Below, piece by piece: positions 43,905-64,000 of a stretch of DNA of 64,000 nucleotides; position 1 is the first letter of the stretch; the number at the start of each line of letters is the position of its first letter. Position numbers and translations under genes: made by a program. This DNA comes from Ostrea edulis (lineage: Eukaryota), in NCBI RefSeq assembly GCF_947568905.1, contig NC_079165.1:103602001-103666000 (forward strand), given 5' to 3'. Below the pieces are notes generated by a model. It had not been told where the DNA came from. It ran no database searches and saw only the letters and a program-made list of their open reading frames with translations.

Positions 43905-44552
43905 ATAATATTTTTTATTATAGTCTTTCTAATTTTTTAACATTCTTTTTATCTCCTGTGTTTTCGGCGAAATATCTTATCAAGCGTTATTTATTTTCAC
44001 ATTTGAGATTGAGGTATTTATATAATGTTAACTGATCTTTTCCTAATCTTACATAGCCTGTTTTGAATTGGATTAATATTCAATGTCAATATATCTAATT
44101 CTACAAGTAAAATCAATACAAATCTTCTCTTCTGTTCACTTATTTCTGAATGTTAATGGTTGTAATTATGGTATACATATACCTAACAGAACAACGTTTA
44201 TACATTTTCACGTGACATATTCAAAACAATTTCACTTTCATTTTAACAAAGAAAACTTTTTTTTTTAAAAACTGAGATAGTTTTATTTTAATTAAGTGTC
44301 ATAATGTGTTAGTGTTGGTAGCGAAATACTTGCAATAATGTGATGATTTCTGTATTATTAATCAAACACAAATATAATCAATATGTATTAAACGTACACG
44401 TTCTTCTTGTATAGGGCGAAATTTTATTATCAAAATAATAGATGACCCATTAAATTACATGATACCATCAACAGTTTCAAACGAGTAGAATTAAAGGTCT
44501 GAAGTTGTAAGAGTACATATATCTTTTGAAGGAATGAAGTTAACTTTTATCC

Positions 44553-44666
44553 ATGAAAGAATAAGATAACGAACAGTGATCAATCTCATGATTCCTATAA
44601 GCAATACAAAATTAAGAGTTGGGCAAACACCGATCCATGGACACACTAGAGGAGGGATCAGGTGAC
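44553..44666 (-). mobile_element. Short 3' fragment of the Naiad-like repeat
   Basis: ATGAAAG..AAGATAACGAACAGTGATCAATCTC. Confidence 0.7.
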
Positions 44667-45749
44667 ATGTTTTCTTATAATTTGTTCACCTTTCAGTCGT
44701 TAAACTCATCATCATTACAAACATACATAAAGAATCAGCACATGAAACACGCGAAATACAGTTATGAAGAGAATTATGAAAACACGTAAACTGTCACGAG
44801 TTACAAATGTAATTTATATGATATGATATCGGTATAAATGAGTTTCATTCCGTATGATTTAATGCATAATTAATTGGTTGCGGTTTTACGCCGTTCTGGC
44901 AATGTTTCAGCCATTTTACGGCGTCGATTTAATGCGAAATGACAAAGCTACACATTTTATTTCATAAAAAGGAACAAACACCAATCAATAGAAATCCCTT
45001 GCGCTGCGGAAGGATTCTCTTACCAACTACCGATGTAGCATTGACCGTGAAGGAAGTCATCTTGGTTCTTCGTGTAACCGGAGCATGTAATGCTATTTTT
45101 CAAATTTGAAAGACGTAGTTATTGAAGGTTGAGTTAACAATGAAACTTGATAAGAGGGGGTGTGTTTAGACCTAATGTTTACGTAACTACTGTGTATCAC
45201 CGACACCGGATATTGCTACCAGACGAAGCGAGGACGTTTGAAGTAATAACACACCACGATTAGAAGTCCTTCTTTTCAACAACTTTTTATGCATTTGCTG
45301 ATGCTACCCGTTTGTTTGGATGTTTCAACTATGTTCAGACGTATTGTCAATGACTTAGAATTACACGAAATAGGGCATTTTTCGTTTTATACATTAAATT
45401 TAAGCTCCAGGAACCTGTGAAACTGAGGGCTCATTCTCAGTTTTTAATTCAAATACAATTCTAGTGATTCATTTCACTGTTTCCCCGTTATGATATGGGC
45501 AATATTCTTACATTGAAATCTGTGTTAGTCCATAAATGTTGATTTTATGAAAGAAATTAACAAAACCAATTCAAGACCTTAGTGATTGATAACTATTGGT
45601 GATCTTCAATTAGTTTCATTACATTTAATTCTCCGACAAAGCTAATGCGTGATCATTGCATCATTTCGTATTCAATATTTTACAAATTTTCTTTCAGGAA
45701 ATTGGATGCACTAAGGTCAATTTTTCAAATGATTAATATTAAAAATAAT

Positions 45750-46194
45750 CATTTTCATTCATATGTCAATTACATATATCCATTTGAAATCGCAATAAAA
45801 GACACCACAGAATCCTTCGCCTCTGCTTCGTACTTATCTACCATTGTTAAAGGTATGGCGTGACCTATTTTTCTTTGTTGATGATGTCAATAAATACCAT
45901 TTTGATATAATGTTGGATTGTTTTTTTTTTCTAAATAGTAACAATGTAATTTCATACCGATCTTTAGATCATTCTTGACACACTGATTGTGACTACGAAT
46001 CACTCTGTTTACCTGATTAAGATATTGAATGTGCTCGCGGCGGATGTTACCAGTCGACAGGGGATGCTTCCTCTTCTTAGGCACCTAATCCCACTTCTAG
46101 TATATCCAGGGGTCCCTGTTTGCCGAACTCTCTATTTTGTATTCCTTATAGGAGTTATGAGATTGATCACTGTTCATTATCTTCACCTTTCATG
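45750..46194 (+). mobile_element. Internally deleted Naiad-like copy that retains an RT segment
   Basis: IYPFEIAIKDTTESFASASYL followed by the family 3' tail. Confidence 0.65.
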
Positions 46195-46687
46195 ATACAT
46201 GTTCTAGTTTGATGGTTTATCTCCCTTTCTTGAAAAAATGGAATGACTTGTCTTTCTTTGTTGGTGATGTCAATGAATACCACTTTGATGTAATGATGGA
46301 TTTTTTATTGATCTGTTATTAGTTGCCCACCGACTTTTAAAACCGAAGAGGACTGTATGTTTTTCTCTGTCTACCCGTCCCTTTGTCTGTCAGTCAGTGC
46401 GTTGCATTTGTTTTTCAGACTTTTTCCAGTTATGTTTGTGGAGATTCATTTGAAACATGTAGTGTAGTTTCAGTGTGGCAAATGCCACACTTATTTTTTA
46501 AAGTAAACAATGGCTACTACTTTGGTGTTTGTATTTGTTTACAAATAAATTTTATTTGTTCTAAATCCCTTCAAGACTTTTTCAATCATATTGAGACGTC
46601 ACCACCTGTAGGTGAAGTACCACTTTAGTCCTGTGCTTAGCTCTCAGGGCCGTAGCAGTGAGGGTTTTAACATGCCAAGGGTAAATT

Positions 46688-46797
46688 CAGGTGACCTATT
46701 GCAATCGGTTGTCGTCCGTCGTCGTGCGTCGTCCGTTAACAATGGAACAATTTTAACTTCTTTTTATAACTACCAGACCAACTTGGTATGAACCATT
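46688..46797 (+). mobile_element. Fragment resembling the 5' end of bivalve Helentron/HINE elements; similar fragments at 46318-46460 (+) and 28625-28810 (-)
   Basis: AGGTGACCTATTG..GTCGTCCGTCGTCGT..CGTCCGTTAACAAT pattern with GTC(Y) microsatellites; family call from memory. Confidence 0.45.
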
Positions 46798-49700
46798 CGC
46801 AACGGTCTATGGGGGTGGTGTCGTATCTTTCGTGGTAAGGCTTGCGTTACACGGCTCAACCTGAACCTAGGAGGGCTTCTGTGGCACAGTGGTTTAAAAT
46901 TTAACGCCCTTAACTTCCTGTTTCGCAATACTGAGTTATCTCCCTTTAATCATCAACTTTCGATTACTCAACTATATCACTCACCACTGCCTACAACCAA
47001 TACCTCCTATATTATTTACCCGCACTCTCCAAGTCACACTAAATTTATTAATACACGAAATCTCTTAAATTCTCTTCTCTATTTGTCAAGCTTATCAACA
47101 CCTAGATTGTAAGGAAGTCACAAAATTCCATAAACACTCAGTATCTTCTGATTCGATTCTCACTCTTTACTATCCCGCATTTCCAAAATAGGCAAAACCC
47201 TCAATTCTAGAAAACCTTGTAAATCTCTGTATTCGAAATAAGACCTTTTTTTTTTTTTTTTTTTTTTTACAATTTATTAAAATGGTATAAATCTCTCAAA
47301 TGCACGATCAACAAATTCTAAACTCTGTCTCAGTCTCTCAAGTCACCTAAATCTGTCTATAAACAACTTTTCCCACCACTCTTATGTTGGAAAATCAACC
47401 AACACTCAAAAGTATAAATTATTCCTGACTCCCAATCTTTCTTCCAGACCTCCTGGATGAAATTAAAAAGCAATAACTAAAACTTAGACCCTTGAACTTA
47501 ATTTCTTAGTGAATTTCCAACACTATTGAAATTCCTGAATAATTTCTAAAACTGAGTTCTGGTAAGTCTGAATTCCAGTTATAAAACAACAGCAAAATTT
47601 AGGAATACACTAGCTTCCTCAGCTAAATGTATAATTTACACTAATCTAATAATATATGGATTTCAATAAATTCTGTAACTATAATTATCTGACATCAATT
47701 TACTAAATATTCAACAAATAGCAAATTTCAGCAAAGTCTAATTACTCACTAAAATTCACTTAACTCAACCAAAACTTCTTATGAAATTCCACAAATAATT
47801 CCAAAAACCCAAAGATGTGCTGGAAATATACCTGGCTCTTCTTAAAATAAAATTAAAAAGTCATTCTCAAGTCTAAATACAAAAATGCCCAACCCATGCT
47901 AACTTCTAACTCCTTGCCCCTAAAACGAAGCTTCACTAAGGAAACGAACCTCGCAGAAGAACCAAAATTCCTTGAATCTTTCCCTTTTATAAAACAAAAA
48001 AAAAACAAAAAAAAAAACAGGACGTAAAAGTTGGAAAACGTTGTACACGTTGGAAAATGTCGGAGAATCTCTCGTGACATTTCCCATAAGCGGCAAAACT
48101 CGTAGAAAAATCTAAGTACAAACAAGACAACTATTCTGAATTAAAATCATCACTAAATACATTCCTAAACTGAAATAAGTAAATTATTATCCGTTTAATA
48201 CAAATAACACGGTTAACTCCAAAAATCCCAAAGCTATAGTAACTTTAACGATCGGGCTCGACCTCCTATAATTAAGACAACCAAGTCTGTAAACAAATTC
48301 TACCAGTTTACAACAGGACAATAAACCATCGTTAATCGACTGAAAACAAGTTAGAGGCCGGGAGTAACCTATAAAAATGTACACCCCTACAGCAATTAAG
48401 CATATATGGCAAGAGGGCAGGGCTTAGCAGTGTTATCAGAATAAGCAGCAGTCTGATGCTTGACTCTACACGTGCTCTGTAGCAGACGATATTTTGAACA
48501 GGGAGACTGGCATGATTTATCAAAATAAACTAACGTTTTCCCGCATTTTTTTTACCACTCTGCTCAATCTGTGAGGCACTGAAGGGATATGTTTTTACTT
48601 TAACAAAACTTCACCCTAGGAACTACAAAATGAATTCAGTATTGTTTTATCCATGTCTTTTAAAACATGTAGTTTTATGATAATATACACAAATATTGGT
48701 ATAAATGATATACTAATACTTATGATTTTCCTCTTGGTGCCTTGCAATTATGAGAAGAATTTGGGGGGAAATCGTAGCTGTGCAATTGAGGACATGTGCA
48801 TTGAAGGATTATTAAGAAACACTTTGTCCATTATGATATTTGGAGATCTACTATCTGTGATTGTCTCTTTTGACATTGTAATGTTCACACGTGAGAGTCC
48901 AGATTGAGAGTAATTTTAGAGTGATGGTTGATCAATTGGAAATTTTGTCATCATTGGTGATAGACAATGGGAGTTGCACAACTGGCCTAGGAGATTGTTG
49001 CTTAATCAGACAAACATCATGCTTGACATTATTCGAGAAAAGGTACCAGCAATCCTGCAAAACTCTGAAACAGCAATCAGACTGAACATTCCTAATGAGT
49101 TATTTTTATAAAGTTAACCAATTTTTTAAAGGAATGTGATTATATATCATTAAAAAATAAAATCTGGATTTACCAATGATATGAGTAAGTACTTTTTTCC
49201 ACGTTATACAGTGATTTGATTACATGTTTCCTTTGGTGCAATCTCCCTTATCTAGAACTAGACAAGCATACTCGTGCAATATGTGAGTCAACATCCGGTG
49301 TAAACAATAACAAAAGATAATCACACCCACAAACTGCCAATCTCTAGTTTGAAATACAAATTTCGCCCTGTTTCTGAATGTGACCAGAAAATTCATATAT
49401 TCCACCATTTTCACCAATTGGCTGCTTTTATACCCAATTACCGGCCTTTAAACTACAGGAAACATGCCATCATCCATAAAGCTATGGTTTACTTCCTATA
49501 GGATACCCATTTAAAAGTCCCTAGCAAATTAAGTAAGCTAAAATTCTACAACTTTACCACAGCTTACGATCAGGTGATTTCTACTAAAGTCAAAACATGT
49601 GCTCAAACTATTTCAACACATACAAATCACTTAAACTTTTCAATAATGACCTATCAACTACATGAAAATCATAACTTATACATATTCCTGCAATGTCAAG

Positions 49701-49808
49701 TCAAAATACACCAATACAAGTTCCTCTAAACTTTCCAACAAATGTCATCAATAATCAGGTTCAATAACTCTCTATGAAACTAATCTGTCAAATCACTCGA
49801 CCGTTAAA

Positions 49809-50039
49809 ATATATAAGATCTATTGAGTAGCACCAAATTAGCATAAAATGAAGTAATTGAAAATAGCATTATTTAAAGATATGTTTAATTCTTAATTATT
49901 GCGTGCTTTAAATGAATCAAATAAATCTGTATCATCAGTTAATGAGAGCAATATTGAGTTACTAGTACTGTTCTCTTTTATTGAATTAACGATATCGTTT
50001 GTCTTAATAAGAGCGCGATTATTACAAGATCATCGGTTG

Positions 50040-50092
<53 letters not shown>

Positions 50093-50761
50093 CTCTCTCT
50101 CTCTCTCTCTCTCTCTCAGGGTAAATATTATACTCTGATACTTCCCCTGATTGAAGATAGCCGATCGGCACGGGCTAAGTGTGTCGCAGTCTGTACAATG
50201 GACAATGGTATTACTGTTGGAATGCAAATGGAGTTTATCGTTTTGTTTCATGGATTATGCAAATAAAGGGAGTTTTACTATTGCTGAGAGTATTTTCGAC
50301 AAGTGTACACGTACATCTACGGTCCTTTACATATATTACGAGTAGACCCAGGTAAATCAGTTTTTGTATATTTTGACATATTTACTGCAAATGTACGCAC
50401 ATTCACGTAAAGAAAAGACATTTTATATATATTTATCCAAAGCTTTTAGAATGATTTACTTCTGTACGATATGTTTATTATAATTTTGAGCACTGCGTGG
50501 TGTTCCAAAACGTGATTTTATTTCTTCTTGATGTCCTATAAATTAGTATTGGAGATGTACGTGTTACCTGTCGAAGCTACCCGCACAGGTAAATCGAAGA
50601 TACTGATGTGAAGTGAAGCGTAACAAAACTCGTCCCCTTATATACCATGCGAATCCTGATACATATAACAATAGAATGTTCAACAAATATGGCGGATTAG
50701 CAGAGAAATATGGCGGACATATAGAATTATACTATATTTATTAATTCATGTCAGCTTTAAG
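49809..50761. repeat. Older inverted-repeat unit A, upstream of G5
   Basis: Reverse-complement homology to 54102-55367 with many substitutions and a shared internal GA/CT microsatellite; mirrored at 60576-61538. Confidence 0.9.
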
Positions 50762-50764
50762 TTT

Positions 50765-50853
50765 TTAGGTTTGACACAGTCATGGTACGAGCGAGTCTTG
50801 CACTCAAGACTGGTTACGAAACGAACGCTCTACCAACTGAGCTGCCGCGACCG
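50765..50853 (-). mobile_element. Head only of the same tRNA-SINE; mirrored at 60484-60570 (+)
   Basis: GGTCGCGGCAGCTCAGTTGGTAGAGCGTTCGTTTCGTAACC; body cut off at the boundary of repeat A. Confidence 0.7.
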
Positions 50854-51661
50854 TTATACAAATAAATGATGGTAAGTAAATTCCATATTTTCAACAGTGA
50901 CAAGTGACAAACATGATATACAGTTTACTTACAATATGATTGTGGTATTAAGAAGCATATCAATCATTGTGTGACTGAAAAGGAATTTTTACCACATACT
51001 TTAGGTTACATCACTTAATACGCAAACAAAACAAAGCACGAATCATCTTTAGATAGCAAAATATTGCGAGCTCCGTAATACACATATAAATGAACAAGTG
51101 ACATTATGGTTGATCATAAAATTTGCGAAATGCCAATTTTAAACAAGGCTGTGAAAAATCCCGTACTATAAACTTATTTGTTTTGTAGTCTTGTCTCAGT
51201 TTGAAAATTGATGATACGCAGAACATACTCTCGCTTATGGAATCAGCTGGAAAACACTATATGCAGATGGTATTGAAATATTGCTACATAAATATGGGAA
51301 GTTGAAGACGGAGAAGGTGAAGTCATCCCGTTTGTCAAAGTTGAGTTCTTGATACTTCTGATATATTTTATAATGACAAATTAAATATGCTATAAAAGTG
51401 GACAGTATATATACATTAACATCCAATGGCGAGAGGGGGGGGGGGGGGGGTCAGCACATTCTTGCATTATACTTATTCTTAATGTTCAGTATAAAACTTT
51501 CTCCGGGGAGTAAGTTGATTCCATATGCAAATTGTAGATCTAGATTTTTCTTCTTCTAATTACAATCGAGCCATGACCAAAAAGGATATTTAGATTTGTG
51601 CAGCATATGTGTTTTGCTGGTTACAAATGTAGTCCCATTTCACTGTCTGTCTTAGATCTCC

Positions 51662-52159
51662 ATCGTCAACTTCCCATCTTTGTGCAGCAATATTCCATTA
51701 TCACCTGGATATGGTCTTTATATATCTCAACTGATTCGATATACAAAAGGTTATTCTGCATATAGTCAGTTTTTATATGGAAACAAGCTACTGACAAACA
51801 AGTTGATGGTACAAGGGTTTCAACAGTCTCGATTGAAGTCAGCATTTCTCCAATTCTATGCTCGCTATAACGATCTAGTTCGTCAGTACAATGTTTCAAT
51901 GGGTCAAATGCTGTCTGATGTGTTCATACCGGTTGTTAAGCCGTTCTTGGCACGCTGATTTTGACTACGGATAACTCCATTTACCTGATCAGGATATAGG
52001 GCTCACGGCGGGTGTGACCGGTCGACAGGGGATGCTTACTCCTCCTAGGCACCTGATGTGCCCTGGTGTGTCCAGGGGTCCGTGTTTGCCCAACTATCTA
52101 TTTTGTATTGCTTGTAGGAGTTATGAGACTGATCACTGTCCGTTATCTTCACCTTTCAT
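51662..52159 (+). mobile_element. Naiad-like copy upstream of G5; mirrored at 59171-59668
   Basis: SNIP.SP.YG.YISQLIRY..LLTNKL..QGFQQSRLK plus the 3' tail. Confidence 0.78.
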
Positions 52160-52536
52160 CTACAATGTTTTTGTAACAGTGCATTTTTATTTCGTTTGCT
52201 GTTTTCCGTCCCTTTTGAGAGTTTTAAACTCATATTGAGACGTCAATAGCTTGAGGGAAATTGTCATACATTTTTACTCGTGCATGGCGCTCAAGGTCGA
52301 TGTAATTAGGATTTTCCGTTTTATGGTTATAATCTGAAGACCAATTTAGACGGGAAATGGGAGAGGATGTACAATGATAATTTGTATTGAAAACATTCAC
52401 ATTGATCTGAAATCAAGGAATACAGATTTAGTGGAAATAAATCTAAACAAATATTTGACACGTGCTAGATTCCAGCCACGATACAGAACGACAGTCTTAC
52501 AAGTTAACAATTGAGTTACCCTACTTTGTAGGAAAC

Positions 52537-52544
52537 TATAAATA
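52537..52544 (+). promoter_or_regulatory. Candidate TATA box of G5; mirrored for G6 at 58786-58793 (-)
   Basis: AAAC-TATAAATA-G about 135 bp upstream of the ATG, conserved with G4. Confidence 0.5.
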
Positions 52545-52676
52545 GAAATACATGTTTTGCTATTTCTATTATTATTTCGAAAGGAAATCAGCCATTATCA
52601 CAATGTTTAATTCGTATCAAATAGGAGGAAAAACTACTTGAACCAGGAAGCTCTTTTTCTCAAAGGAACAACAAAA

Positions 52677-53882
52677 ATGGAAAACAGTACGTATTTATCG
52701 GAGAAGTTAGATGCGTGGAATAGTGAACTAGCCAGTGGTTTAACCCCGAATAATGTGATTTTGTCTCTGTATATTGCAACAAGTTTGTTGGGAAATTCTA
52801 CAGTGATTCTGATTTATGGATTTAAGATGAGAGGAAACAAGGAAGAAAGATACTTTATTCCATTCCTTGCTATGGCGGATCTATGTGCTTCCTTGGTTTG
52901 CGCTTCTTTCGGAATCGCTCTCAACATGATGCAGGCCGAGTTTAACAACACGCACCTGTGTAAAGCCTGGTGGTTCTTCGCGGCGTTTACTACTTTCACG
53001 TCAATTTTGTTTCTCTTCATCATTGCCGTACACAGGTATCTCAAAGTCTGTAGACCTCTTGGAAAACAAATGATTCTGAAATGGAAAAGATTTGCTTTAG
53101 GTTTGGGTTTGTTTGTAGCATTTATACATGCTGTACCTATGGTTCATTTTTATGGATCAGTTCCCTTTCCTAATGAGGAGGAGGGGATCGTTGGACTACG
53201 GTGTAGCAGGCTGAAAACCATCAACAAAACAGGCTCTTTGATCTTTGGAGGAGTCATAGTTCTCATAACAGTTGCATGCATTGTTACGCTAATTTTTCTC
53301 TATGCCAAGATTGGATACACTATTCTTGCACACTTCAAATTTTCAAAATCCCCATGCAAACCTGATACCAGTTCGGACACAGAAAAATCCAGCAGGATCA
53401 ATCACTCTCAGGTTACAATCTCAAGCAGAAACGACCCTCTTAGTGGCACAGAAAATGGAACCTACTCTATCGAGACGGACAACACTGAATTATCCGAATC
53501 GTTACCTCCTCAAACGTCTACAAAAACAACAGGGAAAACTCTTACAACAAATACAAAGCTTGAAAGAAAACTGAATCCTTATAAGTCAAGTGCAAAGCGG
53601 AGAAAAGAAAGGAACAACCAGCGAGTTGTACACAAATTCACTCTGATGTTTATGCTCATCACGATAATCTTCCTCATTTGTTACATCCCAAAGGTTATCA
53701 TCATGTTACTAGAGGCTAGGAACCCGAAGTTCTGGGAGGAGTTTTCAGATTCTGCTAGAGCTGGCGTGCTGTTTGTGTATAGGATGTACATCATAAACAA
53801 TATTACTAATCCAATCATTTATGCATTCCTGGACGAGCAGTTTGCTAAAGAAATCAAGTCGTTGTTTAAAGTTTGCAAATGA
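52677..53882 (+). CDS. G5: intronless class A orphan GPCR, 401 aa
   Basis: GNS, LAMAD, HRY, CYIPK, NPIIY. Start set at the ATG homologous to G2/G4; the ORF track uses a TTG at 52638. Confidence 0.95.
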   Translation: MENSTYLSEKLDAWNSELASGLTPNNVILSLYIATSLLGNSTVILIYGFKMRGNKEERYFIPFLAMADLCASLVCASFGIALNMMQAEFNNTHLCKAWWFFAAFTTFTSILFLFIIAVHRYLKVCRPLGKQMILKWKRFALGLGLFVAFIHAVPMVHFYGSVPFPNEEEGIVGLRCSRLKTINKTGSLIFGGVIVLITVACIVTLIFLYAKIGYTILAHFKFSKSPCKPDTSSDTEKSSRINHSQVTISSRNDPLSGTENGTYSIETDNTELSESLPPQTSTKTTGKTLTTNTKLERKLNPYKSSAKRRKERNNQRVVHKFTLMFMLITIIFLICYIPKVIIMLLEARNPKFWEEFSDSARAGVLFVYRMYIINNITNPIIYAFLDEQFAKEIKSLFKVCK

Positions 53883-54101
53883 TAAAATACCATGGTGTCA
53901 TCATTACATAGCTTTGTGAAATATGATATTTCTTAGGTTTTTATGAAATATGGAATCTATTTGACGTCACACAACATTGTGTCCATCTTATCATATGTCA
54001 TCATATTACAAGTAATTACATATATACATAACCATGTAAGTAATTGTAAAGAACATTGGATTTGCAATTCTTTTGGGAAAAGAACATATTATTCATCTCT
54101 G

Positions 54102-55053
54102 CTTAAAGCTGACATGAGTTAATAAATATAGTATAATTCTATATGTCCGCCCTATTTCTTTGCTATTCCGCCATATTAGTTGGATATTCTATTGTTATAT
54201 GTATCAGGGTTCGCATGGTATATAAGGGGACGAGTTTTGCTACGCTTCACTTCACATCAGTGTCTTCGATTTACCTGTGCGGGTAGCTTCGACAGGTAAC
54301 ACGTACATCTCCGATACTAATTTATAGGAGATCAAGAAGAAATGAAATCACGTTTTGAAACACCATGCAGTGCTCAAAATTACAATAAACATATCGTACA
54401 GTAGTAAATCATTCTAAAAGCTTTGGATAAATAAATATAGAGTGCCTTTTCTTTACGTGAATGTGCGTACATTTGCAATAAATATGTCAAAACTATACAA
54501 AAACACGGAGAAATATTTCATCTATTATCTAGATCTATTGATGAAATGGAATAAGCAAAGGATATAAAATCTATACCATTCACACTTACTTCAAGCAAAA
54601 TGCAAATACATAAATGCGACTGTACGTATAAAGAAGACATGGTCATGTATGTTCGTCATGAAAAAGCATCGAATGCGGATGACTATTTACCTGGGTCTAC
54701 TCGTAATATCTGTAAAGGATCGAAGATGTACGTGTATACTTGTCGAGAATACTCAAAGTAGTAGTAAAACGCCCTTTATTAGCATAATCCATGAAGCAAA
54801 ACGATACACTCCATTTGTATACCAACAGTAAACAACATTGTCCATTGTACAAACTGCAACACACTTAGCCCGTGCCGATCAGCCATCTTCAATCAGGGGA
54901 AGTATCAGAGTAGAATATTTACCCTGTATTGTGCATGAATCCCTATACCGTATGATCTACTTGTCAGAGTATTGCAGATTTATAAATCAGGAAATTATTT
55001 AGGTACATAAATTGTTTGTGCATAGATAATTTGCATATACAACACTGCACGAG

Positions 55054-55116
<63 letters not shown>

Positions 55117-55367
55117 CAGGATATATATATATATATATATATATTCAAACGATGATCTTGTAATAATCGCGCTCTTATTAAGACAAATGATATCGTTAAT
55201 TCAATATAAGAGAACAGTAACTCAATATTGCTCTCATTAATTGATAATACAGATTTATTTGATTCATTTAAATCACGCAATAATTAAAAATTAAACATAT
55301 TTTTAAATAATATTATTTTTAATTACTTCATTTTATGCTAATTCGGCGCTCAATAGATCTTATATAT
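54102..55367. repeat. Older inverted-repeat unit A', downstream of G5
   Basis: Reverse complement of 49809-50761, with extra insertions near 54505-54680 and 54927-55060. Confidence 0.9.
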
Positions 55368-55635
55368 CTATGCCATTTTGTTTTATTACATTCTGCGTTT
55401 AACTCGACGCAAATTCTAGTAATGCAAAATGTAATAATTGAGTTTATCATATGCGTAGTTATCAAGCACATAGAATATTTTTTTTAAAACATATTTTATT
55501 GAGAAACTCAACAGGATTGAGCAACAGGCATAGCCTATGTAGGCCCTCTCCCAAATACAAAGGTCAAGTACAAAGTACTTAGAATCAAAGTGAGGGGACA
55601 AGAGTGTCTGTCCTCCACCTTTGATAACAATATCC

Positions 55636-55831
55636 ATTTTTTTATGTTTTCCGCCACACTCAACAATTTTTCAGTTATCTGGTGGCACCGAGTTTTTGTT
55701 GGTGGAAGAAAGAAAACAGATACAATGTATCTGGGAAGAGACCACCGACCTTCCGAAAGTATACTGGGAAACTTTCTCACTTACCGGCGCGAGCGGGTTT
55801 CGAACCCGTGCCGACAGAAGTGAGAGGCCGT
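55636..55831 (-). mobile_element. Copy of the second SINE family in the palindrome spacer; B box kept, A box missing
   Basis: GGGTTCGAAACCC followed by the same body as 4739-4960. Confidence 0.65.
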
Positions 55832-55969
55832 TATTTTGTAATGCAAGTAAAAATATATTGGGCAATAATGCTGAATTAGTAGTGTGAAAGAGTGTGAGAA
55901 TGTATAAAATTATTATTATGTATCTTCATTACTATTACTGATGATTATGTGAATATGGAAAAAGAATAA

Positions 55970-56027
<58 letters not shown>

Positions 56028-56029
<2 letters not shown>

Positions 56030-56865
56030 TGATGATCAGATGGAGTTCAATCACATAACATTTATTTCTCTACAGTCTGTTTCGTAAGGGGATGGTTTCC
56101 CCTCACTCGTCGGGAGAAAAATGACATCTAACGAAAAACATCCGCATGGCTGAGAATATGTTACACAGAAACATACTGGATAGTTGCTAAGCATGATTAC
56201 ACACAGGATTGAGTAAATAGAAATTTATGGGAATGACGGCAAGTGCTGACGAGTTCTGAACGCTTATTCAATGAAGATTTTTCGGGATGACATATTATAA
56301 AGAATTTCTCTAGAATACAAAGGTTGCACTTTTTTGAAATGTTTGAGTATGATGATGTTTTTCCTAAAATTTCCCACTTGATTTTGTAGTCAATATTTTT
56401 GTCTTTCAATGTCTATATGAATTTGCTGAGCTCGGTGGTATTCTTTTTCGTGGAATTACGGAATGAATGAGTGTGGTTGGCGTATCTTAATTTGAACTCG
56501 GTGTCTGCTAGTCCCACGTAGCTCTCTTCTTGTCCATTATCGGCTCTGACTCTAGCTAAGTACACAATTCCGTGGGCGCGACATTCACCGTTGAGCGGGC
56601 ATTGATCTTTGTTTCGGCAATTACACCTGTTACATGTATCTCCGGTCTGGCGCACTTGTTTGATTGAAGCGTTATGCGAGTCGATTACATTTTGCATGGA
56701 TGGCATACAACTGTACGATATTTTAATAGTGTTTCTGTTGATAATCGAGCAATAATAATAACATGGCCTATCGGGAAACACTCATCTATAATTTTGAGAA
56801 ACTGTTTACCCAAGTTTGTTTTTACGTTACTATCATATGGGGGGTTAAACCATGTGATGTTACGG
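56028..56865 (-). mobile_element. 5'-truncated Penelope-like element with a C-terminal GIY-YIG endonuclease remnant
   Basis: [45 protein letters not shown] linker, [27 protein letters not shown]; one frameshift and a TAG at 56413-56415; a hammerhead follows the ORF. Confidence 0.88.
56059..56123 (-). ncRNA. Type I hammerhead ribozyme motif with a core substitution (CCGACGA)
   Basis: Minus strand TTTCTC-CCGACGA-GTGAGGGG(AAACCAT)CCCCTTAC-GAA-ACAGACTGT-A-GAGAAA; stems I, II and III all pair; GUA cleavage site. Confidence 0.8.
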
Positions 56866-59800
56866 ACATTCACGTAAAGAAAAGGCACTCTATATTTATT
56901 TATCCAAAGCTTTTAGAATGATTTACTACTGTACGATATGTTTATTGTAATTTTGAGCACTGCATGGTGTTTCAAAACGTGATTTCATTTCTTCTTGATC
57001 TCCTATAAATTAGTATCGGAGATGTACGTGTTACCTGTCGAAGCTACCCGCACAGGTAAATCGAAGACACTGATGTGAAGTGAAGCGTAGCAAAACTCGT
57101 CCCCTTATATACCATGCGAACCCTGATACATATAACAATAGAATATCCAACTAATATGGCGGAATAGCAAAGAAATAGGGCGGACATATAGAATTATACT
57201 ATATTTATTAACTCATGTCAGCTTTAAGCAGAGATGAATAATATGTTCTTTTCCCAAAAGAATTGCAAATCCAATGTTCTTTACAATTACTTACATGGTT
57301 ATGTATATATGTAATTACTTGTAATATGATGACATATGATAAGATGGACACAATGTTGTGTGACGTCAAATAGATTCCATATTTCATAAAAACCTAAGAA
57401 ATATCATATTTCACAAAGCTATGTAATGATGACACCATGGTATTTTATCATTTGCAAACTTTAAACAACGACTTGATTTCTTTAGCAAACTGCTCGTCCA
57501 GGAATGCATAAATGATTGGATTAGTAATATTGTTTATGATGTACATCCTATACACAAACAGCACGCCAGCTCTAGCAGAATCTGAAAACTCCTCCCAGAA
57601 CTTCGGGTTCCTAGCCTCTAGTAACATGATGATAACCTTTGGGATGTAACAAATGAGGAAGATTATCGTGATGAGCATAAACATCAGAGTGAATTTGTGT
57701 ACAACTCGCTGGTTGTTCCTTTCTTTTCTCCGCTTTGCACTTGACTTATAAGGATTCAGTTTTCTTTCAAGCTTTGTATTTGTTGTAAGAGTTTTCCCTG
57801 TTGTTTTTGTAGACGTTTGAGGAGGTAACGATTCGGATAATTCAGTGTTGTCCGTCTCGATAGAGTAGGTTCCATTTTCTGTGCCACTAAGAGGGTCGTT
57901 TCTGCTTGAGATTGTAACCTGAGAGTGATTGATCCTGCTGGATTTTTCTGTGTCCGAACTGGTATCAGGTTTGCATGGGGATTTTGAAAATTTGAAGTGT
58001 GCAAGAATAGTGTATCCAATCTTGGCATAGAGAAAAATTAGCGTAACAATGCATGCAACTGTTATGAGAACTATGACTCCTCCAAAGATCAAAGAGCCTG
58101 TTTTGTTGATGGTTTTCAGCCTGCTACACCGTAGTCCAACGATCCCCTCCTCCTCATTAGGAAAGGGAACTGATCCATAAAAATGAACCATAGGTACAGC
58201 ATGTATAAATGCTACAAACAAACCCAAACCTAAAGCAAATCTTTTCCATTTCAGAATCATTTGTTTTCCAAGAGGTCTACAGACTTTGAGATACCTGTGT
58301 ACGGCAATGATGAAGAGAAACAAAATTGACGTGAAAGTAGTAAACGCCGCGAAGAACCACCAGGCTTTACACAGGTGCGTGTTGTTAAACTCGGCCTGCA
58401 TCATGTTGAGAGCGATTCCGAAAGAAGCGCAAACCAAGGAAGCACATAGATCCGCCATAGCAAGGAATGGAATAAAGTATCTTTCTTCCTTGTTTCCTCT
58501 CATCTTAAATCCATAAATCAGAATCACTGTAGAATTTCCCAACAAACTTGTTGCAATATACAGAGACAAAATCACATTATTCGGGGTTAAACCACTGGCT
58601 AGTTCACTATTCCACGCATCTAACTTCTCCGATAAATACGTACTGTTTTCCATTTTTGTTGTTCCTTTGAGAAAAAGAGCTTCCTGGTTCAAGTAGTTTT
58701 TCCTCCTATTTGATACGAATTAAACATTGTGATAATGGCTGATTTCCTTTCGAAATAATAATAGAAATAGCAAAACATGTATTTCTATTTATAGTTTCCT
58801 ACAAAGTAGGGTAACTCAATTGTTAACTTGTAAGACTGTCGTTCTGTATCGTGGCTGGAATCTAGCACGTGTCAAATATTTGTTTAGATTTATTTCCACT
58901 AAATCTGTATTCCTTGATTTCAGATCAATGTGAATGTTTTCAATACAAATTATCATTGTACATCCTCTCCCATTTCCCGTCTAAATTGGTCTTCAGATTA
59001 TAACCATAAAACGGAAAATCCTAATTACATCGACCTTGAGCGCCATGCACGAGTAAAAATGTATGACAATTTCCCTCAAGCTATTGACGTCTCAATATGA
59101 GTTTAAAACTCTCAAAAGGGACGGAAAACAGCAAACGAAATAAAAATGCACTGTTACAAAAACATTGTAGATGAAAGGTGAAGATAACGGACAGTGATCA
59201 ATCTCATAACTCCTACAAGCAATACAAAATAGATAGTTGGGCAAACACGGACCCCTGGACACACCAGGGCACATCAGGTGCCTAGGAGGAGTAAGCATCC
59301 CCTGTCGACCGGTCACACCCGCCGTGAGCCCTATATCCTGATCAGGTAAATGGAGTTATCCGTAGTCAAAATCAGTGTGCCAAGAACGGCTTAACAATCG
59401 GTATGAACACATCAGACAGCATTTGACCCATTGAAACATTGTACTGACGAACTAGATCGTTATAGCGAGCATAGAATTGGAGAAATGCTGACTTCAATCG
59501 AGACTGTTGAAACCCTTGTACCATCAACTTGTTTGTCAGTAGCTTGCTTCCATATAAAAACTGACTATATGCAGAATAACCTTTTGTATATCGAATCAGT
59601 TGAGATATATAAAGACCATATCCAGGTGATAATGGAATATTGCTGCACAAAGATGGGAAGTTGACGATGGAGATCTAAGACAGACAGTGAAATGGGACTA
59701 CATTTGTAACCAGCAAAACACATATGCTGCACAAATCTAAATATCCTTTTTGGTCATGGCTCGATTGTAATTAGAAGAAGAAAAATCTAGATCTACAATT

Positions 59801-61218
59801 TGCATATGGAATCAACTTACTCCCCGGAGAAAGTTTTATACTGAACATTAAGAATAAGTATAATGCAAGAAAGTGCTGACCCCCCCCCCCCCCTCCCCCC
59901 CCTCTCGCCATTGGATGTTAATGTATATATACTGCCCACTTTTATAGCATATTTAATTTGTCATTATAAAATATATCAGAAGTATCAAGAACTCAACTTT
60001 GACAAACGGGATGACTTCACCTTCTCCGTCTTCAACTTCCCATATTTATGTAGCAATATTTCAATACCATCTGCATATAGTGTTTTCCAGCTGATTCCAT
60101 AAGCGAGAGTATGTTCTGCGTATCATCAATTTTCAAACTGAGACAAGACTACAAAACAAATAAGTTTATAGTACGGGATTTTTCACAGCCTTGTTTAAAA
60201 TTGGCATTTCGCAAATTTTATGATCAACCATAATGTCACTTGTTCATTTATATGTGTATTACGGAGCTCGCAATATTTTGCTATCTAAAGATGATTCGTG
60301 CTTTGTTTTGTTTGCGTATTAAGTGATGTAACCTAAAGTATGTGGTAAAAATTCCTTTTCAGTCACACAATGATTGATATGCTTCTTAATACCACAATCA
60401 TATTGTAAGTAAACTGTATATCACGTTTGTCACTTGTCACTGTTGAAAATATGGAATTTACTTACCATCATTTATTTGTATAACGGTCGCGGCAGCTCAG
60501 TTGGTAGAGCGTTCGTTTCGTAACCAGTCTTGAGTGCAAGACTCGCTCGTACCATGACTGTGTCAAACTTAAAAACTTAAAGCTGACATGAATTAATAAA
60601 TATAGTATAATTCTATATGTCCGCCATATTTCTCTGCTAATCCGCCATATTTGTTGAACATTCTATTGTTATATGTATCAGGATTCGCATGGTATATAAG
60701 GGGACGAGTTTTGTTACGCTTCACTTCACATCAGTATCTTCGATTTACCTATGCGGGTAGCTTCGACAGGTAACACGTACATCTCCAATACTAATTTATA
60801 GGACATCAAGAAGAAATAAAATCACGTTTTGGAACACCACGCAGTGCTCAAAATTATAATAAACATATCGTACAGTAGTAAATCATTCTAAAAGCTTTGG
60901 ATAAATATATACAAAATGTCTTTTCTTTACGTGAATGTGCGTACATTTGCAGTAAATATGTCAAAATATACAAAAACTGATTTACCTGGGTCTACTCGTA
61001 ATATCTGTAAAGGACCGTAGATGTACGTGTACACTTGTCGAAAATACTCTCAGCAATAGTAAAACTCCCTTTATTTGCATAATCCATGAAACAAAACGAT
61101 AAACTCCATTTGCATTCCAACAGTAATACCATTGTCCATTGTACAGACTGCGACACACTTAGCCCGTGCCGATCGGCTATCTTCAATCAGGGGAAGTATC
61201 AGAGTATAATATTTACCC

Positions 61219-61307
<89 letters not shown>

Positions 61308-64000
61308 CAACCGATGATCTTGTAATAATCGCGCTCTTATTAAGACAAACGATATCGTTAATTCAATAAAAGAGAACAGTACTAGTAACTCAATATTGCT
61401 CTCATTAACTGATGATACAGATTTATTTGATTCATTTAAAGCACGCAATAATTAAGAATTAAACATATCTTTAAATAATGCTATTTTCAATTACTTCATT
61501 TTATGCTAATTTGGTGCTACTCAATAGATCTTATATATTTTAACGGTCGAGTGATTTGACAGATTAGTTTCATAGAGAGTTATTGAACCTGATTATTGAT
61601 GACATTTGTTGGAAAGTTTGGAGGAACTTGTATTGGTGTATTTTGACTTGACATTGCAGGAATATGTATAAGTTATGATTTTCATGTAGTTGATAGGTCA
61701 TTATTGAAAAGTTTAAGTGATTTGTATGTGTTGAAATAGTTTGAGCACATGTTTTGACTTTAGTAGAAATCACCTGATCGTAAGCTGTGGTAAAGTTGTA
61801 GAATTTTAGCTTACTTAATTTGCCAGGGACTTTTAAATGGGTATCCTATAGGAAGTAAACCATAGCTTTATGGATGATGGCATGTTTCCTGTAGTTTAAA
61901 GGCCGGTAATTGGGTATAAAAGCAGCCAATTGGTGAAAATGGTGGAATATATGAATTTTCTGGTCACATTCAGAAACAGGGCGAAATTTGTATTTCAAAC
62001 TAGAGATTGGCAGTTTGTGGGTGTGATTATCTTTTGTTATTGTTTACACCGGATGTTGACTCACATATTGCACGAGTATGCTTGTCTAGTTCTAGATAAG
62101 GGAGATTGCACCAAAGGAAACATGTAATCAAATCACTGTATAACGTGGAAAAAAGTACTTACTCATATCATTGGTAAATCCAGATTTTATTTTTTAATGA
62201 TATATAATCACATTCCTTTAAAAAATTGGTTAACTTTATAAAAATAACTCATTAGGAATGTTCAGTCTGATTGCTGTTTCAGAGTTTTGCAGGATTGCTG
62301 GTACCTTTTCTCGAATAATGTCAAGCATGATGTTTGTCTGATTAAGCAACAATCTCCTAGGCCAGTTGTGCAACTCCCATTGTCTATCACCAATGATGAC
62401 AAAATTTCCAATTGATCAACCATCACTCTAAAATTACTCTCAATCTGGACTCTCACGTGTGAACATTACAATGTCAAAAGAGACAATCACAGATAGTAGA
62501 TCTCCAAATATCATAATGGACAAAGTGTTTCTTAATAATCCTTCAATGCACATGTCCTCAATTGCACAGCTACGATTTTCCCCCAAATTCTTCTCATAAT
62601 TGCAAGGCACCAAGAGGAAAATCATAAGTATTAGTATATCATTTATACCAATATTTGTGTATATTATCATAAAACTACATGTTTTAAAAGACATGGATAA
62701 ATCAATAATGAATTCATTTTGTAGTTCCTAGGGTGAAGTTTTGTTAAAGTAAAAACATATCCTTTCAGTGCCTCACAGATTGAGCAGAGTGGTAAAAAAA
62801 AATGCGGGAAAACGTTAGTTTATTTTGATAAATCATGCCAGTCTCCCTGTTCAAAATATCGTCTGCTACAGAGCACGTGTAGAGTCAAGCATCAGACTGC
62901 TGCTTATTCTGATAACACTGCTAAGCCCTGCCCTCTTGCTATATATGCTTAATTGCTGTAGGGGTGTACATTTTTATAGGTTACTCCCGGCCTCTAACTT
63001 GTTTTCAGTCGATTAACGATGGTTTATTGTCCTGTTGTAAACTGGTAGAATTTGTTTACAGACTTGGTTGTCTTAATTATAGGAGGTCGCGCCCGATCGT
63101 TAAAGTTACTATAGCTTTGGAATTTTTGGAGTTAATCGTGTTATTTGTATTAAACGGAAAATAATTTACTTATTTCAGTTTAGGAATGTATTTAGTGATG
63201 ATTTTAATTCAGAATAGTTGTCTTGTTTGTACTTAGATTTTTCTACGAGTTTTGCCGCTTATGGGAAATGTCACGAGAGATTCTCCGACATTTTCCAACG
63301 TGTACAACGTTTTCCAACTTTTACGTCCTATTTTGTTTTGTTTTTTTATATAAAAGGGAAAGATTCAAGGAATTTTGGTTCTTCTGCGAGGTTCGTTTCC
63401 TTAGTGAAGCTTCGTTTTAGGGGCAAGGAGTTAGAAGTTAGCATGGGTTGGGCATTTTTGTATTTAGACTTGAGAATGACTTTTTAATTTTATTTTAAGA
63501 AGAGCCAGGTATATTTCCAGCACATCTTTGGGTTTTTGGAATTATTTGTGGAATTTCATAAGAAGTTTTGGTTGAGTTAAGTGACTTTTAGTGAATAATT
63601 AGACTTTGTTGAAATTTGCTATTTGTTGAATATTTAGTAAATTGATGTCAGATAATTATAGTTACAGAATTTATTGAAATCCATATATTATTAGATTAGT
63701 GTAAATTATACATTTAGCTGAGGAAGCTAGTGTATTCCTAAATTTTGCTGTTGTTTTATAACTGGAATTCAGACTTACCAGAACTCAGTTTTAGAAATTA
63801 TTCAGGAATTTCAATAGTGTTGGAAATTCACTAAGAAATTAAGTTCAAGGGTCTAAGTTTTAGTTATTGCTTTTTAATTTCATCCAGGAGGTCTGGAAGA
63901 AAGATTGGGAGTCAGGAATAATTTATACTTTTGAGTGTTGGTTGATTTTCCAACATAAGAGTGGTGGGAAAAGTTGTTTATAGACAGATTTAGGTGACTT
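56866..64000. repeat. Right arm of the giant inverted duplication
   Basis: Reverse complement of 47340-54464. Confidence 0.97.
57448..58653 (-). CDS. G6: inverted copy of G5
   Basis: Reverse complement of 52677-53882; no nucleotide difference found in a line-by-line comparison. Confidence 0.95.
   Translation of the reverse strand: MENSTYLSEKLDAWNSELASGLTPNNVILSLYIATSLLGNSTVILIYGFKMRGNKEERYFIPFLAMADLCASLVCASFGIALNMMQAEFNNTHLCKAWWFFAAFTTFTSILFLFIIAVHRYLKVCRPLGKQMILKWKRFALGLGLFVAFIHAVPMVHFYGSVPFPNEEEGIVGLRCSRLKTINKTGSLIFGGVIVLITVACIVTLIFLYAKIGYTILAHFKFSKSPCKPDTSSDTEKSSRINHSQVTISSRNDPLSGTENGTYSIETDNTELSESLPPQTSTKTTGKTLTTNTKLERKLNPYKSSAKRRKERNNQRVVHKFTLMFMLITIIFLICYIPKVIIMLLEARNPKFWEEFSDSARAGVLFVYRMYIINNITNPIIYAFLDEQFAKEIKSLFKVCK

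Follow-up and report, generated by a model that had tools for sequence, protein, structure and literature searches.

The stretch of Ostrea edulis DNA analysed here, a 64,000-nt piece of contig NC_079165.1 (positions 103,602,001 to 103,666,000) that is called the window in what follows, carries an inverted duplication of a receptor gene, and in the spacer of this palindrome lies a truncated Penelope-like element (PLE) that may have had a part in making it. The two genes are identical open reading frames (ORFs) for a rhodopsin-family G-protein-coupled receptor (GPCR), one in each arm, and the spacer between the arms holds sequence present on the left only, a (TA)n microsatellite and the element (Table 1). 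The 10 kb that follow the window were read as a separate piece, L018, and genome searches covered an assembly of 895 Mb in 10 chromosomes.

When the left half of the window was compared by blastn with its right half and L018, a single inverted match was obtained, between 46865-54472 and 64480-56857, with 99.1% identity over 7633 columns that include 34 mismatches and 8 gaps; the region has no N gaps. The right arm extends 480 nt past the end of the window (64000), to position 64480 (G000:C2:103666480), and base-by-base identity of the arms stops at 54464/56866, which leaves a duplicated arm of about 7.6 kb and a spacer of 2391 nt. Mirror-image positions in the two arms sum to 111330. All the differences between the arms lie outside 52130-54464, with 34 substitutions in the outer 5265 nt (0.65%, or 0.32% per lineage). 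The inner 2335 nt (52130-54464 against 56866-59200) show neither differences nor indels, for which the probability at the outer-arm rate is 3e-7.

With regard to the direction of copying, the right arm is the derived copy because it is cut within repeats that are complete on the left, and this applies at both ends. At the inner end, the left arm runs on through the repeat A' to 55350, while only the first 363 nt of this repeat are present in the right arm. The outer boundary (46862-46865) falls 61-64 nt into a 386-bp repeat copy (46801-47186) that is complete on the left only. A preliminary description of this DNA had already called the right arm derived from the first of these observations, and the two ends now agree. 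Repeat A' (54102-55350) is an inverted relative of repeat A (49829-50761), as seen from inverted matches between them. The repeats A and A' that bracket the GPCR gene are two inverted copies, 82-94% identical, of a very high-copy family with internal (GA)n and (TA)n tracts and not as a local duplication, and the contig depth at both is 100-1000 times that of unique arm sequence.

The outer joint, J2, lies at 64480/64481, where the right arm meets a repeat designated T2 with a 2-nt (GT) microhomology. A placement of J2 at the terminus of T2, to which 39 copies that begin matching at the same base had pointed, was rejected, since in 67 of 68 other copies a TCTCCGAACCCCCT-type sequence, either exact or altered at 1-3 bases, is conserved upstream of that base, and T2 is therefore cut internally. 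No second copy of 44000-46864, the 2.9 kb to the left of the left arm, with which the palindrome could resume past T2, was found anywhere in the genome, and no homology was found between the outer flanks of the palindrome. T2 (L018:479-3429, G000:C2:103666479-103669429) is a non-coding repeat of at least 2.95 kb with internal tandem units of 277-328 bp and copies that are 95-98% identical; here it is cut on the left by the palindrome joint, and a nested long terminal repeat (LTR) element comes after it. The latter (L018:3430-7995) appears to be an intact Ty3/Gypsy-type retrotransposon, with 196-nt direct repeats (98% identical) and an ORF of 1328 aa with RVT_1, RNase H and integrase domains. 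Another side observation is a tandem array of 31-nt units from 14455 to about 27000 of the window, with at least 396 register copies that are 92-96% mutually identical, which swamps direct-repeat searches of the whole window.

Table 1. Features of the palindromic locus, in coordinates of the window.
Feature	Position	Strand	Remarks
Left (original) arm	46865..54464	+	from blastn; contains repeat A (49829-50761), the GPCR gene and the first 363 nt of repeat A'
Inner zone identical to its mirror 56866-59200	52130..54464	.	from the arm-to-arm alignment
GPCR ORF, left copy, intact, single-exon, rhodopsin family	52677..53882	+	401 aa from ATG; Pfam 7tm_1, E 7.7e-31
CGTA, 4-nt match to the first bases of the element	54466..54469	+	one mismatched base (54465 G) away from the joint
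Left-only spacer	54465..55974	+	remainder of A' to 55350, with (GA)n and (TA)n at 55060-55150, then a SINE
tRNA-like short interspersed nuclear element (SINE), very high copy	about 55555-55948	-	inside the left-only spacer
(TA)n microsatellite, preferred target of the family	55975..56026	.	adjoins the element 3' end; other copies likewise flanked by (TA)n
Penelope-like element copy, 839 nt, 5'-truncated	56027..56865	-	C-terminal third of the ORF (linker and GIY-YIG nuclease) and 3' untranslated region
Inner joint J1, blunt	56865..56866	.	element (..GATGTTACGG) meets host (ACATTCACG..)
Right (derived) arm	56866..64000, on to 64480 in L018	-	ends at joint J2
GPCR ORF, right copy, identical to the left one and tail-to-tail with it	57448..58653	-	coordinates by mirroring; within the zero-difference zone

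The receptor genes stand in a tandem cluster with at least five further paralogs of 83-93% identity (G000:C2:103609601, 103644123, 103710383, 103739847 and 103745292), all on the plus strand, so that the right-arm copy is the sole inverted one. At the mirror sites 53717/57613 and 53076/58254, four of four population samples show the non-reference base only (e.g. 53717 T>C). The assembled haplotype has private or rare alleles in both arms at those sites, as expected if the arms were homogenised within the haplotype.

The element copy in the spacer aligns to positions 1330-2169 of a reference sister copy (L013:2778-4946), and it is dead, with W559 changed to a stop (56414) and a complex 5-bp frameshifting indel at 56748-56759. 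It is 97-98% identical to at least 40 scored copies among 730 candidates, of which the longest seen reaches at least 2.17 kb. The ORF of the sister copy (L013:2878-4770) encodes 630 aa, and public data contain over 3000 homologs, which typically have about 700 aa and lie on contigs of some 2.5 kb; those with a named source belong to Solemya velum, a bivalve, and Oculina patagonica, a coral. An AlphaFold2 model of the 630-aa protein (pLDDT 82.8, the predicted local distance difference test) has its best Foldseek matches in TERT (3du5, E 3.6e-9) and in fungal and ciliate telomerases, with group II and LINE-1 reverse transcriptases (RTs) ranking lower. Across 22 homologs, YRDD and motif A (FDIVDFYPSI) are invariant, as is a C-terminal series of GIVY, ten residues further YVG, then R535, H539, E594 and N608. 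Pfam recognises GIY-YIG in homolog P0001 (26.2 bits, cut-off 22.6) and, below threshold and in a homolog only, RVT_1 (25.9 bits against a cut-off of 29.6). Pfam searches with the ORF pieces of the window and with the full ORF returned nothing significant, and sequence searches of the PDB, single-sequence and profile, found nothing.

Taken on the predicted telomerase-like RT fold, the C-terminal GIY-YIG and the (TA)n targets, the element is a member of a young Penelope-like family. Its 3' end (..CATCAATTTA) directly adjoins the (TA)n tract, as in sister copies, and the earlier assignment to a 5'-truncated PLE primed at (TA)n has been borne out by the RT fold, the nuclease residues and this junction. 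Hallmarks of PLEs, including head-to-head pairs and a conserved tail, have been described by Craig et al. (2021, PMC8557442). According to the same study, the Hydra clade comprises elements under 3 kb with a C-terminal nuclease, a single ORF and (TA)n insertion, found in aquatic invertebrates including molluscs and cnidarians, which have no CCHH in the GIY-YIG core, an altered linker motif and, in all cases, canonical hammerheads (PMC8557442). The protein of the present family has the linker CNRCNCRNKDQCPLNGEC and, further on, a C..C and a C.H pair. By its C-terminal nuclease, small size and (TA)n targeting the family provisionally fits the Hydra clade, beside which it is set by description.

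A search of L013 and L001 with Rfam cmscan returned no family, hammerhead included, at E <= 1. A hammerhead-like core was seen by eye in the 3' untranslated region (UTR), at 56086-56125 of the window (minus strand) and at L013:4853-4890, consisting of CCGACGAG, a 9-bp stem and CGAAAC, with C at the conserved U4 position. Additionally, a conserved 57-nt tail (TGTAGCTCCGTGAGGCC..TTATCCCA) is found at L013:4947-5003 and in L002, L003, L007 and L011, between the element 3' end and (TA)n and at one end only of the insertion units, which matches the PLE "tail" (PMC8557442).

At the inner joint, J1, the plus strand reads TTACGGACAT at 56860-56869, the left arm reads AATGTGCGTAC at 54460-54470 and sister copies of the element read ..GATGTTACGGGAACG... 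The element extends up to 56865 and the host begins at 56866, with zero bases in common. Position 54465 (G) is mismatched with 56865 (G, complement C), and next to it TACG at 56861-56864 is the reverse complement of CGTA at 54466-54469. The coordinates given earlier for the limit of arm identity (54464/56866), the single mismatch and the CGTA match (54466-54469 against 56864-56861) are all exact, base by base. What does not survive is the claim of a 4-nt microhomology at the breakpoint, as the joint is blunt, 56865 belongs to the element and not to the host, and the CGTA match lies one base away from it. Since the host G at 54465 is found in both copies of repeat A and is thus ancestral, the mismatch did not arise by later mutation. 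Among 400,000 simulated joints of these two sequences, a run of at least four matches within 6 nt occurs in 1.3% on one side and in 2.6% on either side. CGTA had also been regarded as element-derived and as the start of the R-N codons, in line with the CGT-AAC of the intact 630-aa ORF in the sister copy and with the presence of an exact 35-mer starting with CGTAAC in 67 genomic arms. Since 64 of these 67 arms have the canonical TTCC upstream, CGTA and the C before it come from the element.

The same 67 arms, the window copy included, served as the set for comparing 5' ends. Only three of them are without the canonical upstream TTCC, namely the window copy, L007 and L016a. L007, on another chromosome and with an unrelated flank, has a 5' end identical to that of the window copy, give or take two nt (CC) that its flank could also supply; the 5' end of L016a is one nt longer, and L017b ends 4 nt further upstream. 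The probability that at least three arms out of the other 66 end within 5 nt is about 0.002, and that at least one ends at the identical base about 0.05, figures that, with a comparison range picked after the data had been seen, amount to roughly 10:1 in support and are no proof. The 5' end of the window copy looks to have been formed by retrotransposition and not by a random break. The ends cluster within 5 nt (GTTC/C/CGTAAC) at positions 1326-1330 of L013:2778-4946, as seen at window 56865, L007:1501, L016:1840 and L017:1907, a pattern suggestive of a favoured stop or site of template switching, or else of a shorter RNA that begins there.

Head-to-head inverted pairs, whose arms are 99.7-100% identical, make up at least 19 of about 32 loci, and an inverted-template switch at the 5' end is therefore, to judge from these arrangements, a habit of the family. 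In one of the loci (L005:1248-1368 against 1715-1835, G000:C7:69895625-69896711), the inverted partner is an internal piece of 121 nt; its start lies 344 nt downstream from the switch point and it does not extend to the 3' terminus. Since twin priming from the 3' end cannot yield an internal partner, this pair directly attests a snap-back of the cDNA onto itself.

A single aberrant PLE insertion, in which the end of the cDNA annealed back on the target strand at a site 1.56 kb upstream, is tentatively put forward as the origin of the inverted duplication. The GIY-YIG nuclease of the element would have cut at (TA)n, where a normal 3' junction is observed, and target-primed reverse transcription would have yielded a cDNA of 839 nt, halting where copies of the family often end, as in the independent copies with the same 5' end. 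In the usual course the cDNA end would switch onto its own cDNA and give rise to head-to-head pairs. Here, the 3' end of the cDNA (..TTACGG) may instead have folded back on the same, resected target strand 1.56 kb upstream, with TACG pairing to CGTA and the terminal G mismatched, and a polymerase, more probably that of host repair than the RT, would have copied the DNA to the left for 7.6 kb, with the entire GPCR gene in it. The new strand would then have been captured through the 2-nt microhomology by the other end of the break, chewed back into T2, with loss of the DNA in between. The outcome would be a tail-to-tail pair of identical receptor genes, in which the identity of the inner 2.3 kb would stem from later arm-to-arm gene conversion.

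Under this proposal the PLE may have switched onto the chromosome strand that was priming it and not onto its own copy, and one germline event might thus have doubled an intact GPCR gene within 7.6 kb of DNA. In its favour are the 3' end on (TA)n as in sister copies, the switching habit of the family, the natural-looking 5' end, the offset CGTA, the compatible ages of element and arms, a precedent with L1 in tumours, and the derived state of the right arm, whose two ends indicate that it is a copy of the left arm placed between the head of the element and T2. The preliminary description had cDNA switching template at CGTA onto DNA about 1.5 kb away and copying it backwards. Of this, a retroelement-triggered duplication stands as the single likeliest reading, but CGTA is not a junctional microhomology; similarly, the right arm is an inverted copy of the left, but copying by the RT itself is unsupported and a host polymerase is more plausible.

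Several points weigh against a single insertion event. The inner junction is blunt and the primer end would be mismatched, which makes for weak microhomology, and J2 has no (TA)n at all, so that a further deletion has to be postulated on the right. A second process is needed to account for the identical inner 2.3 kb, and the 5'-end statistics carry the limit given with them. In a survey of four solo copies of the element with 1.2-1.5 kb of flank each, no inverted host copy was found within that flank in L004 and L007, the two whose 5' flanks are not (TA)n. Furthermore, among short-read contigs from four runs in four studies on 52600-58500, no listed contig bridges a joint, a result that is uninformative and not negative; by contig depth in those four runs, 53979-57327 is entirely high-copy repeat (A', SINE and PLE).

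The relative ages of element and palindrome bear on the order of events. Compared with 14 sister copies, the window copy has 16 private alignment columns, made up of nine substitutions and one complex 5-bp indel, against 0-4 in the sisters. The view that the element is clearly older than the palindrome (p = 0.004, per-lineage) was downgraded, since the private coding substitutions outside the indel cluster are synonymous in four of four cases and at three of its private sites the window copy has CpG in place of the TpG or CpA of all young copies, so that the excess is largely divergence between active master lineages and not decay of the window copy. Clear damage after insertion is limited to the W-to-stop change (56414), the indel and perhaps two UTR changes. 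In a like-for-like comparison, the element differs from the young copies at 9 of 839 positions (1.07%) and the outer arms at 34 of 5265 (0.65%; Fisher p = 0.18). The ages are compatible with one event, and also with either order. Moreover, the identical inner 2.3 kb means that the arms were later homogenised or were copied in two steps, which undermines the molecular clock.

An order in which the element came first is a serious competitor, though an unlikely one. An older resident PLE, plausibly in a head-to-head pair and hence a fragile palindrome, would have broken at its centre, and the end would have folded back 2.4 kb upstream, with the exposed natural 5' end priming a break-induced inverted copy and with the partner arm and the right flank lost up to T2. 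Pairs of this kind with little spacer, centred at positions 1326-1330, do occur in the genome (L016 and L017), the natural-looking 5' end is accounted for, and no RT acting on DNA is required. The copy is dead (stop, frameshifting indel and possibly two UTR changes) while the inner arms have zero differences in 2335 nt, as such an order would predict; however, the outer-arm divergence of 0.32% per lineage matches the damage to the copy since its insertion, and no age gap is required. This course also requires cleavage exactly at the arm joint and full loss of the partner arm and flank, one step more than a single event. Taken together, the two readings in which the retroelement is causal, the single aberrant insertion and the broken resident pair, make such a causal role fairly probable.

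The reverse order, already offered as an alternative in the preliminary description, seems more doubtful. An inverted duplication longer than the present one, possibly with the self-complementary (TA)n at its centre, would have been in place when the PLE landed in its preferred target, its 5' junction deleting about 1.5 kb of the right-arm tip. Such a course would leave a normal 3' junction and a natural-looking 5' end, as seen, and (TA)n is conducive to fold-back as well as to PLE insertion. Two of the solo copies surveyed (L004 and L007, out of four) have no (TA)n flanking the 5' end, a sign that 5' junctions in this family involve deletion or rearrangement of the target. Nevertheless, two rare events at one site are required, and the element is if anything older than the arms (1.07% against 0.65%, a difference that is not significant), so that gene conversion of whole arms would have to be invoked.

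It is improbable that the element was present by coincidence, with an inverted duplication formed by template switching, of the fork stalling and template switching (FoSTeS) or microhomology-mediated break-induced replication (MMBIR) type, whose breakpoint fell by chance in a longer resident copy. Both joints have the 0-2 nt of microhomology typical of such events, in a repeat-rich tandem GPCR cluster. Against this, a breakpoint placed at random would seldom coincide with the natural 5' ends, which cluster within 5 nt (about 5 in 1330-2000 positions), and no other piece of the element was found in the window, in the next 10 kb (to window-equivalent 74000, 17 kb to the right of the element) or in L019 (84001-94000).

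An assembly artefact, in which the inverted arm would be a mis-joined haplotype or the product of a chimeric read, is a still slimmer prospect. The arms are near-identical, the best sequencing run contains 54% of the words of the stretch, no listed short-read contig spans the joints and the assembly has no alternative haplotig of the arm. However, two specific asymmetric joints and a 2.4-kb spacer are unlike a missed-adapter fold-back, and the 34 substitutions and 8 indels between the outer arms, together with the lack of N gaps, indicate that two distinct sequences were assembled.

Least probable of all is an RNA acceptor, by which the RT would have jumped from the element RNA to a nearby unspliced sense GPCR transcript and left the right arm as a chimeric retrocopy: template jumping between RNAs is normal for such enzymes, the template is in GPCR sense, the insertion is in the read-through zone and the matched block ends exactly at 54469, 34 nt after AATAAA at 54430-54435, but there is no poly(A) at the joint and the 7.6-kb colinear copy, from which no intron was removed, would require a 5.8-kb unspliced leader starting within a repeat copy.

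Oyster and other invertebrate genomes are rich in PLEs and in tandem and inverted clusters of receptor genes. If the single-insertion reading is true, PLE insertion would be a direct generator of palindromic gene duplicates in such invertebrate genomes, and the switch, acting on the primer strand as a snap-back, could duplicate genes. To our knowledge, fold-back rearrangements bridged by L1 have so far been seen in tumours only, and the locus would extend them to germline evolution and to another class of retroelement. The locus would also be a natural reaction product of the usual inverted template switch, in this case landing on host DNA; how the 5' end of PLEs is resolved is an open mechanistic question, for which an in vitro system has been called for (PMC8557442). 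If the element was a mere bystander, the locus would be an ordinary inverted duplication of the microhomology type.

Among known systems, the palindromes of primate Y chromosomes are large and are kept uniform by arm-to-arm gene conversion. The oyster palindrome resembles them in its gene-bearing arms, its unique spacer and its stretch of zero divergence, but it is much smaller, it is asymmetric with one truncated arm, and the inner 2.3 kb alone are identical, the outer arms being 0.65% apart. Inverted duplications are also formed at double-strand breaks by fold-back priming and MMBIR. The present locus shares with these events the short spacer, the 0-2 nt of microhomology at both joints and a derived arm cut at arbitrary positions within repeats; unlike in them, one end here is the natural 5' end of a retroelement and not an arbitrary genomic position.

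A parallel in the element itself is offered by the head-to-head inverted pairs of 5'-truncated PLEs (Craig et al. 2021, PMC8557442; Evgen'ev and Arkhipova 2005, as cited there). The locus has in common with them the family, the (TA)n target, the donor switch point (positions 1326-1330 of L013:2778-4946), the outward 3' end and inverted sequence adjoining the 5' end. In those pairs, however, the partner is a second copy of the element, whereas here it is 7.6 kb of host DNA from 1.56 kb upstream of the insertion site.

Finally, fold-back inversions that are bridged by small L1 insertions, at a breakpoint distance of 5.5 kb, have been found in human tumours (Rodriguez-Martin et al. 2020, PMC7058536). 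Those events are somatic, depend on an apurinic/apyrimidinic (AP) endonuclease and lead to megabase duplications, isochromosomes or breakage-fusion-bridge cycles, while here a PLE with GIY-YIG is found in a germline assembly, and the duplication is interstitial, spans 7.6 kb, is closed by a second joint and contains two intact receptor genes. In both cases, the 3' end of a small 5'-truncated insert lies at a target of endonuclease type, its 5' end is fused, inverted, to sequence only a few kb off on the same chromosome arm, and the adjoining sequence is duplicated head-to-head, at a distance of 5.5 kb in the tumours and of 1.56 kb here.

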